This document shows, one piece after another, positions 32,953 to 35,900 of a stretch of 64,000 bases of DNA. Source of the DNA: Pavona decussata (taxonomy: Eukaryota); NCBI GenBank assembly GCA_977016875.1, contig CDRNST010000002.1:558001-622000 (forward strand). Reading direction: 5' to 3'. Numbering within the stretch: position 1 is the first letter of the stretch; every line of letters begins with the position of its first letter. The translations under genes were made by a program, and so were the position numbers. The notes under the pieces were generated by a model that was given only the letters and a program-made list of their open reading frames with translations, was not told the DNA's origin and did not search any database.

Positions 32953-35900
32953 GCTCGTGGAATAATTATTAAATAGCTATAAAAAGTAGCAATGTTAGAA
33001 AATATACAAAACAAAGCAAAACAATGACTTATAAGAGAAAAACAAGTTGACAATCACTTTTTTATGTGCTTTACGAATGATTTTACGGATGCGGCAGCGT
33101 TTGACTGTCCCTATTCCAGAATAATGGTCCAGCCAAACGTAAACGAATCCACCACCGATGTGGTTCGACACTGGCCAACATTGTTGAATTCAAGTGATAC
33201 TGGAATTGCCTGGCCACTATGATTTTAATATTGCTGAACGAAGTCCCCCATAGAGGGGGGTAACGCAACTACACCGAGCTCACTTGTCTATTTTACGGTG
33301 GAAAATTAATTTGGAGATAAAATCTGAAATGAGCACTTTCTTTTGCAATGTCTTCTATGCATAATAATATTGCTTGGAATAGAGCAAGGGGAGACGTTAG
33401 TGTTGATTTATTTGCGGGCCACTAGTAAATTGAGTCGCGCTCGCGCAATAAAAAAAAGCGTCATCTAGACGTTGACCAAAGGTATCCAGCATGTTTCATC
33501 CAGCACATTTGGGAGATGTTAAATTCGTTTGACTACCCCACATAACTTCGTCCATGGACGTTGCATTAATATCTCTTTTACAGCTAGTGTCATACAGTCT
33601 TTATTAGTGCTGGAACAGCGTTAGAATTTGCACTTGTATGACACTTTCTAGTAAATAAAGATTCACAATCATTCATAAACCAAATTCGAATGATGTTGAT
33701 GATGTTGAGTTCAGTCTATACGGCCTAACATGTGTAAGATTTAATAAGGCCGATTTAGACGGTACAACTTTTGCTTACGACTGTCGCATACGATTTCTGG
33801 GTCGCGCGCTGCTCGCGTCATGCAAAAAATCGCACACAACTCTCGTTACTCAACATTGCCTATACCTACGATTTTAAAACATGTTTTAAGGGCGATTTAG
33901 ACGGTACGATTTTCTCTTACGACTGTCGCATGCGATTTCTAGAGCGCGCGCTGCTTGCGTCATGCAAAAATCGTACACAACTCTCGCCACTCAACATTGC
34001 CTTTACCTACGATTGTCGTAGGATTTTAAAACATGTTTTAAGGGCAATTTAGACGGTACGATTTTGCCTACGATTTGTCGCAAGCGATTTCTAGAGCGCG
34101 CGCTGCTTGCGTCATGTAAAAATCGTACACAACTCTCGCCACTCAACATTGCCTTTACTTACGATTGTCGTAGGATTTTAAAACATGTTTTAAGGGCGAT
34201 TTAGACGGTACGATTTTGCCTACGATTTGTCTCATGCGACACGCTTACGCCATGCCTACAACACGAATCGCGTCGTGTAAATCAACCTACAACATCCTTA
34301 CGACAGACGCACACAACACGAAAAATGTCGTAGGATTTTAAAACATGTTTTAAAATCCTACGACAATCGTAGGTAAAGGCAATGTTGAGTGACGAGAGTT
34401 GTGTACGATTTTTACATGACGCAAGCAGCGCGCGCTCTAAAAATCGCATGCGACAGTCGTAAGAGAAAATCGTACCGTCTAAATCGCCCTTTAAAATCCT
34501 ACGACATTTTTCGTGTTGTGTGCGTCTGTCGTAAGGATGTTGTAGGTTGATTTACACGACGCGATTCGTGTTGTAGGCATGGCGTATGCGTGTCGCATGC
34601 GACAAATCGTAGGCAAAATCGTACCGTCTAAATCGCCCTTTAAAATCCTACGACATTTTTCGTGTTGTGTGCGTCTGTCGTAAGGATGTTGTAGGTTGAT
34701 TTACATGACGCGGTTCGTGTTGTAGGCATGGCGTAAGCGTGTCGCATGCGACAAATCGTAGGCAAAATCGTACCGTCTAAATCGCCCTTTAAAATCCTAC
34801 GACATCTTTTGTGACGTATACGACAGTCGTAAGTGAGTTGTAGGTTTGATTTACACGAAGCAATTCGTGTCGTAGGCCTGTCGTAAGCTTCTCGCATGCG
34901 ACAAAGTTGTCTCGTATAAATCGTCCTATAGAATGGTCTCGAGCTGTCACTCGTTCACAACAGTTTTGACTACCTCCCAGCAGATAAACACGCCATACCA
35001 TGTATTACAATTCACAATGCATTAAAAGTTTTAGAATGGAGAATTTTAGTAATCATTATGTGTTTATTTATTCCGGAATAGTGCCAATCAGATCGTACGA
35101 ACCCAAAATTTCATTTCCAGTCATGCTATTCATTCAGCTGTTTATCACATGAAGATCTCACAAAACAATAACATCATAGAATAATGAACGATACTCACCG
35201 GTAGCTTCATTTTTAACAGTAAGCCTTACGGATCCTTCATCCTTCCCAACAATGTTACTCGCAATACACTTGTATTGCCCGGTCTCCTTAGTTTCAACCT
35301 GACGGACTAACAAAACACCATTCGGAAGTAACAAATGTCTACTGTCATTCTTGATCAGCTCTTCGTTCCTTCTCCATGTGATGTGAGGGCTGGGCTTTCC
35401 AACAACCGTACAGATCAATATTAGATTGTAGCCTCTTTCAACAGCGAGGGATGAAATCGTTTTCCTTTTGACCTCTGCATGAGCCATTGCATAACCCTCG
35501 ATTCGTTTTTCGTTGAAGACGTGTCGCAACTGACGGTCAAGGATTTCAGGAGGAACTGCAAAAAATAAACAAAGGCTAAAATCATTGCGTTTCTTAAAAT
35601 TACCACAAATTATGCGAATTTTCGTCCATGAGGGATGTAAGTGTCATGGCGCTAAAAAGATCGCCAAGGAGACATATCCATGAAGCCTTTATAAATCAGA
35701 GTTACAAAATGGCAAATTTTACTTTGCAAAACGGTGTCAAAGAAACAGAATCATAAGCAAGTACTGCTGACGACGTTTCACTTCAGGAATTCATCAACAG
35801 ACTAAACATTTTGAACCGACGTGTCCAGCATAATAAAGAGCACAACAGGAAAGTACTGCTCAGTTGCTAACATTTGAATGGTCACCCTTTGGCTTTCATC

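Follow-up and report, generated by a model that had tools for sequence, protein, structure and literature searches.

Structure of the nested repeat

The 64,000 bp stretch of the Pavona decussata genome analysed here (the window; positions 558,001 to 622,000 on the forward strand of contig CDRNST010000002.1, assembly GCA_977016875.1) contains, at 33747-34927, four copies of a MITE (miniature inverted-repeat transposable element) nested one within another. The structure consists of seven blocks in the order A1 A2 A3 (inverted whole copy) B3 B2 B1, such that the left half of the element (A, approximately 152 bp) is present in three direct copies, as is the right half (B, approximately 149 bp), either side of a single intact copy (Table 1). 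The unit element is 298 bp long, starting with AGGGCG and ending with CGCCCT, and is delimited by terminal inverted repeats (TIR) that are exact over around 24 bp and extend imperfectly (81%) to around 50 bp. At its middle lies a 40 bp perfect palindrome, the dyad of which is formed by the hexamer ACATGT, with a TWA triplet one base away on each side.

Every junction within the nest joins an exact element terminus to a TTA beside the centre of the host copy's palindrome, this triplet being the TWA found one base from the ACATGT dyad. The junctions of the inner copies are all alike, reading CATGTT-TTA-[element]-TTA-AAATCC with the TTA duplicated each time. The 24-mer of the terminal repeat occurs seven times, in each case within the nest and nowhere else in the 64 kb (0 expected), and the 40 bp palindrome has one match in the window where none is expected. 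The left outer junction is crossed by a public short-read contig spanning 33359-33774, and the right by public short-read contigs from two runs, covering 34862/34864-35500. When a second haplotype of the locus was sought in the assembly through its flanks, only the window's own contig matched.

A first-pass annotation, made from the sequence alone, had described four left arms, a palindrome and four right arms, with an innermost copy that was intact, 298 bp long and inverted relative to copies 2 and 3, and with the same insertion position in each host centre; all of these features were recovered. Its description of such insertions as building 'growing palindromes' is less precise, as the A and B halves are reverse-complementary only at the ends of around 50 bp and in the 40 bp centre. 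Since the halves are not reverse complements of one another, the nest is better regarded as two mirrored arrays of direct half-units than as a palindrome.

Table 1. Coordinates of the components of the nest within the window
Feature	Position	Strand	Details
Left flanking 3 bp direct repeat, ATA	33744-33746		Immediately 5' of where copy 1 begins
Copy 1 (outermost, oldest), left arm A1	33747-33888	+	Matches consensus 1-153; target TTA at 33886-33888
Copy 2, left arm A2	33889-34040	+	98% identity, exact terminal repeat; terminal TTA at 34038-34040
Copy 3, left arm A3	34041-34192	+	Variant block at consensus 26-43; terminal TTA at 34190-34192
Copy 4 (innermost), intact, 298 bp	34193-34490	-	Inverted relative to copies 1-3; TTA on either side
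40 bp perfect palindrome	34326-34365		Within copy 4; the sole uninterrupted one, hence the open landing site left
Copy 3, right arm B3	34491-34639	+	Opens with duplicated TTA; ~99% identity
Copy 2, right arm B2	34640-34788	+	Opens with duplicated TTA; 98% identity
Copy 1, right arm B1	34789-34927	+	Opens with duplicated TTA; diverged like A1
Right flanking 3 bp direct repeat, ATA	34928-34930		Follows the last base of copy 1

Independent insertion of the four copies

Comparison of the window's copies with a consensus derived from 61 independent solo copies shows them to be independent insertions, nested stepwise with the oldest on the outside. Copy 1 is approximately 80% identical to the consensus overall (A arm 82%, B arm 77-83%), against approximately 99% for copies 2 and 4, in agreement with the earlier view that the outermost copy was the most diverged. 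Part of its divergence is attributable to an 11 bp deletion in the left arm of its palindrome, which leaves the core beside the insertion site intact. Copy 2 differs from the consensus at three positions (77T>C, 216C>T and 223A>G), and copy 4 is identical at 295 of 298 positions, differing at 51, 99 and 259. Copy 3 differs at positions 6, 119 and 246 (246A>T, in B3) and is likewise around 99% identical outside a block at consensus 26-43, where its left end bears B-type subterminal sequence; this block variant is also present in 18 of 86 sampled copies elsewhere, and therefore represents a subfamily. Private substitutions overlap between no two of the copies, and within each copy the divergence of the two arms agrees.

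Stepwise nesting is therefore indicated by the terminus-to-centre junctions, the TTA duplication, the inverted copy, the differing subfamilies and the unshared private changes, and the equal numbers of A and B arms, together with the matching divergence of the arms of each copy, distinguish it from duplication in place. The first-pass annotation had argued for separate transposition events from the inversion of the innermost copy, a proposal upheld by these several lines of evidence.

Members of the subfamily (L064, L068, L070, L071, L081 and others, as well as 34041-34192 of the window) have the B-type block at both ends, as does the autonomous partner described below. In the commoner form of the family, the A end has a different subterminal block.

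Classification of the element family

The genome searched, comprising 602 Mb in 1,180 contigs, contains 428 terminal 20-mers of the family at no more than one mismatch, 230 exact terminal 15-mers and 280 intact family centres. The family numbers around 200-300 copies, and the median identity of solo copies to the consensus is 98%. No match to the element was found in Rfam. Being short, non-coding, bounded by TIR and present in many homogeneous copies, these sequences have the characteristics of MITEs. A perfect TTA or TAA pair flanks 46 of 63 independent solo copies, with a matching TAT at one more, and TTA or TAA is duplicated at every one of the nested junctions. These duplications, along with the discovery of a partner that has the same termini and open reading frames (ORFs) encoding DDE_Tnp_4 and MADF domains, support the affiliation with PIF/Harbinger elements that had earlier been suspected; the family is a young PIF/Harbinger MITE. 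When the half-sites of solo insertions are pooled, the target logo has T at -5 and C at -4 followed by TWA, giving a target of roughly TC-TWA-GA.

Other assignments were rejected. A piggyBac-type MITE would be flanked by TTAA on both sides, which is not the case here (for instance, L002 has CTTAA to the left and TTTAG to the right of GGGCG...CGCCC), and the termini are GGGCG...CGCCC rather than CCC...GGG. A 5 bp duplication at the junctions is ruled out by the solo flanks. The element is not of the foldback or hairpin type, as complementarity is confined to the ends of around 50 bp (81%) and the 40 bp centre, the interiors of A and B being unrelated. Nor is it a site-specific element of the Harbinger3_DR type, as only around 9% of ends lie in the palindrome, with the triplet beside the dyad, and the rest follow a weak logo.

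The flanks of some copies merit separate description. In seven of the 63 solo copies (L005, L016, L020, L083, L117, L014 and L104), TTA is found on one side and TAA on the other, more than would be expected from point mutation at 2% divergence; a slip by one base at the element's terminal A/T would fit these mismatched flanks, as would recombination between copies. Other elements have identical flanks, either as pairs (C277:38552 and C393:102237; C164:588350 and C169:624021; C52:492476 and C78:5655160) or within one contig (three copies on C125 and two on C144), indicating that the assembly holds haplotigs or recent segmental duplications and that copy counts are slightly inflated.

Frequency of insertion into the family's own palindrome

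In order to quantify self-insertion, all 230 exact ends were listed with 16 nt of flanking sequence. Those flanked by AAAACATGTTTTA, on the ACATGT side, were designated J1, and those flanked by GTAGGATTTTAA, on the TCGTAGG side, J2. Nine J1 and 11 J2 ends were found, such that 20 of the 230 (8.7%) are located at the palindrome site or its mirror image. Looser patterns, in which the exact inner terminus was not demanded, recovered 23 J1-type and 16 J2-type junctions, and the union of the two counts corresponds to around 26 loci on different contigs. Besides the nests described below, the junctions fall on C20 (four), C43 (three), C49 (two), C60, C91 (3512005), C130, C144 (1568207), C275, C293 (two), C381 and C471. 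The inner copies show no clear bias in orientation or in mirror position, both alternatives being found in each case.

The expected frequency was calculated from position weights derived from 46 solo sites, a simple target model that assumes uniform accessibility of the genome. On this model the nest site scores 1.4 bits, which places it at the 93rd percentile of TWA sites and below the median real site (3.3 bits). The share of insertions expected in family centres, given around 2.8e7 TWA sites in the genome, is 4.9e-5, and the observed share is approximately 1,800 times greater; even a hundredfold bias would be insufficient to abolish this enrichment. The TWA triplets at positions 77 and 211 of the element score equally or more highly on the solo model, yet they are unused.

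That the family carries its own preferred landing site, as the first-pass annotation had supposed, is consequently well supported, with 8.7% of ends at one site where about 5e-5 would be expected. The annotation had named, as results that would speak against it, nesting no more frequent than expected or a target logo unlike the element's centre; the logo is indeed unlike the centre, but nesting exceeds expectation by around 1,800-fold, and the combination of the two results implies that the centre is a separate hot spot rather than merely a good generic site. Self-targeting could possibly be an adaptation, providing a safe harbour for new insertions, or the hot spot could simply be a by-product of a palindrome that binds protein and that the element requires for its own transposition.

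A minor second self-target is represented by three ends (C8:3592426, C88:1931172 and C342:392649) at a TTA within the terminal repeat (GAT-TTA-GAC). On two contigs, the palindrome core followed by G recurs at intervals of 20-57 kb (C20:3121927, 3141792, 3199116 and 3226256; C43:2593714, 2634174 and 2678903), and these junctions may reflect a nest lying within a large segmental or tandem duplication.

An autonomous partner

A search for a partner among the 30 best DDE_Tnp_4 loci, using a fuzzy terminal-repeat match and BLAST within 1.5 kb either side, found no family ends. The partner was instead located on C120 (L076 522-9249), between two exact family ends separated by 8.7 kb. Its inverted termini of 25 bp (L076 522-546 and 9225-9249) are perfect and identical to those of the MITE, and TAA is present on both flanks. 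Two ORFs of interest were identified, for both of which the gene models are incomplete. The first (L076 4911-5963, minus strand) matches the Pfam domain DDE_Tnp_4, which represents transposases of the IS5/PIF type, with an E value of 5.6e-27 and 94.7 bits (cut-off 24.8), as well as Plant_tran with 27.8 bits, and the N-terminus of this transposase is probably encoded by an upstream exon. The other (L076 3073-3618, plus strand) matches MADF_DNA_bdg, a MADF/Myb-like domain, at 24.5 bits (cut-off 22), the match covering only the C-terminal half of the domain.

The left 180 bp of the partner are 99% identical to the MITE, encompassing the B half, the palindrome and slightly beyond, such that the same palindrome lies around 135 bp from one end of the partner. 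The palindrome therefore belongs to the subterminal region of the autonomous element, from which the MITE has inherited it. TACGA/TCGTA motifs cluster in both subterminal regions of the partner, and one such motif is found in each arm of the palindrome. A second copy of the partner, at C91:486583-493052, is 99% identical to that on C120 and is without two unrelated repeats inserted in the latter, meaning that the basic length of the element is around 6.5 kb, within an observed range of 6.5-8.7 kb. A third, more diverged copy is present on C354.

One of the two repeats inserted into the C120 copy (L076:1378-2196) is 819 bp long, is absent from the C91 copy and has at least 10 further copies that are 95-100% identical; it looks like a recently active short element. 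The other (L076:6825-8265) is a 1.44 kb element with 101 bp inverted ends (98% complementary) and internal inverted repeats, of which more than 25 genomic copies are found at 86-100% identity. PIF/Harbinger transposases abound in the genome, which at first look contains at least 985 DDE_Tnp_4 candidates, many having open frames of 440-560 aa and identical scores; this suggests that it hosts several young families.

Other nests and asymmetric arrays

Thirteen nested loci were examined, and eight of these (on C2, C36, C206, C180, C76, C103, C96 and C8) are symmetric or compatible with simple nesting. In the two-level nests on C206 and C76 the inner copy is inverted. The remaining loci are asymmetric: that on C51 has the arrangement A A A [AB] B, those on C219, C58 and C54 are of the form [AB] B, and that on C178 consists of A followed by an inverted copy, without a B arm. 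The outer triplets still match on C219 (TTA/TTA) and C58 (TAA/TAA), which indicates that a half-unit has been lost or gained inside an intact outer element, as would result either from unequal exchange between half-units or from transposition involving the ends of two sister copies. Nests of this kind supply the starting material from which tandem arrays, their period being around 150 bp, can form.

Proposed recognition of the palindrome core

Several observations address which feature of the element is recognised. Old outer copies, only 73-89% identical to the consensus, remain targets wherever the core is intact; in the window itself, copy 1 was hit despite the 11 bp missing from one arm of its palindrome. 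On C348, a copy (L020) is inserted at the equivalent TAA and adjoins 15 nt that match the core, TAAAACATGTTTTAA, in surroundings otherwise unlike the family. Unoccupied cores with non-family flanks number around five in the genome, at C51:3613296, C123:1074067, C143:730174, C171:1033255 and C354:1223850. The half-site ACATGT-N-TWA is found at three of around 205 non-nested ends, as opposed to 0.12% of background TWA sites, a count taken on the unbiased list of ends (in an earlier sample, two of three positives had been selected by their flanks). CATG was not enriched within 10 nt of solo insertions (P = 0.13). The old targets with intact cores, the C348 locus and the half-site enrichment together argue that the sequence of the core is recognised, rather than the whole element or its shape. 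This points to the element's proteins capturing targets in a second mode, one that is specific to sequence and would be centred on ACATGT with a TWA one base away on each side.

A mechanism can be proposed on this basis. The transposase, the MADF partner or both would recognise by sequence the palindrome core TTAAAACATGTTTTAA, on either side of which lie inverted TCGTAGG motifs like those clustering in both subterminal regions. Having captured the core as a target, these proteins would direct strand transfer to a TWA separated by one base from the ACATGT dyad, with both sides and both orientations open to insertion. As each insertion would split one palindrome and bring with it a new, intact one, the site would be self-renewing, and nests could deepen. 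Later, unequal exchange between tandem half-units, or aberrant transposition, might add or remove half-units and so generate asymmetric arrays. Overall, it is likely that the structure in the window results from four successive, independent insertions of a PIF/Harbinger-type MITE, each into the sole open palindrome of its own kind, with the core recognised as outlined here and such arrays subsequently reshaped. A more speculative extension, which we put forward as possible yet doubtful, is that the 16 bp core serves as a dedicated landing pad for a MADF-type protein or the transposase, allowing self-renewing, site-specific integration, and that arrays of half-elements are a regular route from MITE to satellite.

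A number of results weigh against the interpretation of four insertions guided by the core. The solo logo, TC-TWA-GA, is unlike the palindrome centre, so recognition of the latter would have to be a second mode, the molecular basis of which we infer. No enrichment of TACGA/TCGTA was detected near solo insertions (P = 0.45), and motif-guided capture is hence not general. The enrichment of the half-site rests on small numbers, and C348 is a single locus, the flank of which could be a family remnant no longer recognisable as such. Just two events, through copying, could account for the seven junctions of J1 type that lie on C20 and C43. Five of the 13 nests are asymmetric, and unexplained by simple nesting alone; in the case of C51, the three extra A units have 135A>G in common, meaning that not every repeated half-unit is an independent insertion. 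At the nest locus itself, the public short-read contigs of all 21 runs break inside the repeats, leaving the interior unspanned, and neither empty nor filled alleles were found in the assembly.

Alternative explanations

The hot spot might instead be read through the shape of the DNA, were the AT-rich, spacer-less palindrome to be extruded as a cruciform, or bent, in a manner preferred by a TWA-seeking transpososome. As single-stranded DNA the 40 bp palindrome folds at -17.6 kcal/mol (z = -8.4), and structure-driven target choice has been documented in other cut-and-paste elements, such as Sleeping Beauty (PMC3016246). However, the C348 insertion used just the 16 bp core, which is too short for extrusion and has one unrelated flank, and copy 1 was hit with its palindrome arm incomplete; furthermore, a cruciform would pair the two TWA sites, and insertion there would leave no simple 3 bp duplication on linear DNA. 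We regard recognition by shape as decidedly unlikely. Aberrant transposition is an explanation of a different kind, in which two ends on sister chromatids, in the manner of Ac/Ds, would take the centre as their target, producing A-B-B or A-A-B along with an empty sister site. This could account for asymmetric arrays, of which there are five among the 13 nests, and possibly for part of the nesting, and it is consistent with the retention of matching outer duplications at [AB] B loci (TTA/TTA on C219 and TAA/TAA on C58). The same product is nevertheless obtained when unequal exchange deletes one tandem A unit, and the fully symmetric nest in the window needs no such event, making a contribution of this type unlikely, if still conceivable.

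The remaining alternatives dispense with repeated, targeted transposition. Half-units could in principle have multiplied through tandem duplication, slippage or unequal crossing-over of one or two copies, as slippage has been proposed to explain tandem MITE arrays in corals (PMC2872659), and as the extra A units with 135A>G in common on C51 and the [AB] B arrangements on C219, C58 and C54 would suggest. Yet slippage can copy a terminus-to-centre junction but not create one, and in the window each unit boundary is an exact terminus that abuts the centre, with the TTA duplicated. The window's nest also has an inverted innermost copy, an A3 from a subfamily other than that of A2 and A4, no private changes in common between B2 and B3, and as many A arms as B arms. 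Duplication is refuted as the origin of the window's nest by its junctions, inversion, subfamily and private-change evidence, and is very improbable as a general account. Still less credible is an assembly artefact in which repeated reads were mis-joined or folded back into a chimera: although assembly is difficult for repeats of around 150 bp that are 98% identical, and short-read contigs leave the interior uncovered, the A and B halves differ, so there is no global palindrome, the substitutions of each unit are its own, the outer junctions were both confirmed, with two independent runs, and the same two junction types recur at around 26 loci on different contigs. Retention bias alone, through which insertions made randomly at TWA survive neutrally inside old repeats, has a negligible probability. 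An insertion that falls in a repeat is likely to do less harm, and MITE-in-MITE nesting is common in plants (PMC5172404), but this leaves unexplained the single-nucleotide precision within the element, the approximately 1,800-fold excess where most of the genome is non-coding, and the fact that TWA sites elsewhere in the element, though equally good, go unhit.

Significance of the hot spot

Successive insertion guided by the palindrome core would have consequences beyond this family. The choice of targets by eukaryotic cut-and-paste elements is mostly understood as a weak preference for sequence or shape, and few strong site specificities are found naturally. In this case the combination of a roughly 1,800-fold hot spot, a short defined target and intact-looking partner genes, in copies that are 99% identical, makes target capture directly testable. 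If the landing-pad hypothesis is true, this would represent a cut-and-paste system, occurring naturally in a eukaryote, in which proteins guide integration to a specific site that renews itself. Nesting also provides a stepwise and concrete origin for tandem arrays of MITE halves with a period of around 150 bp, which bears on how satellites arise from mobile elements. Such nests would be mistaken by repeat finders either for long inverted repeats or for new composite families.

Comparison with known systems

No description of a Harbinger family with a strong hot spot in its own internal palindrome, hit at a single nucleotide position and giving nests of up to four levels, was found in the open-access literature. 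There are, however, parallels for individual aspects of the system. Maize PIF and Tourist-like MITEs reportedly have the extended target CWCTTAGWG, with a 3 bp duplication of TTA or TAA, and the TC-TWA-GA found here resembles the short palindromic C-TTA-G attributed to maize PIF; to our knowledge, no self-directed hot spot has been described for the latter. In the double Ds structure of maize, a non-autonomous copy is inserted, inverted, into another copy of the same element, much as copy 4 is inverted inside copy 3 in the window. Double Ds nevertheless belongs to the hAT superfamily, generates an 8 bp duplication and is known as one particular structure, not as a site-specific habit that recurs.

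The rice MITEs Castaway and Gaijin frequently insert into members of their own families, and their nested multimers were judged to be independent events (Jiang & Wessler 2001, as summarised in PMC5172404). That summary describes no fixed position in an internal palindrome, no four-level nests and no partner sharing the site, and the host in the present case is an animal. The zebrafish element Harbinger3_DR, which integrates at a palindromic consensus of around 15 bp (Sinzelle et al. 2008, as cited in PMC3016246), shows that the PIF/Harbinger superfamily is capable of strong sequence specificity. In Harbinger3_DR the duplicated triplet is the centre of the palindrome and nearly all insertions are of this type; by contrast, in the coral family the triplet lies beside the dyad at two mirror positions, around 9% of ends are at the hot spot with the remainder following the loose TC-TWA-GA, and the target is inside the element itself.

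Tandem arrays of coral MITEs have been reported previously, in the form of the Acropora CMITEs, which are piggyBac-related (TTAA), are found in arrays ascribed to slippage and have a conserved internal region suspected to be important for transposition (PMC2872659). The family in P. decussata differs in failing the TTAA test and in having junctions made by a transposase. More generally, a double insertion of transposable elements at a preferred site can seed a satellite, which then expands by unequal exchange (McGurk & Barbash 2018, PMC5932611). The array of 152 bp half-units on C51 looks like the start of this route, with the difference that, in the published model, two elements share a genomic target and are arranged head to tail, whereas here the target lies within the element and it is the half-units that become tandem.

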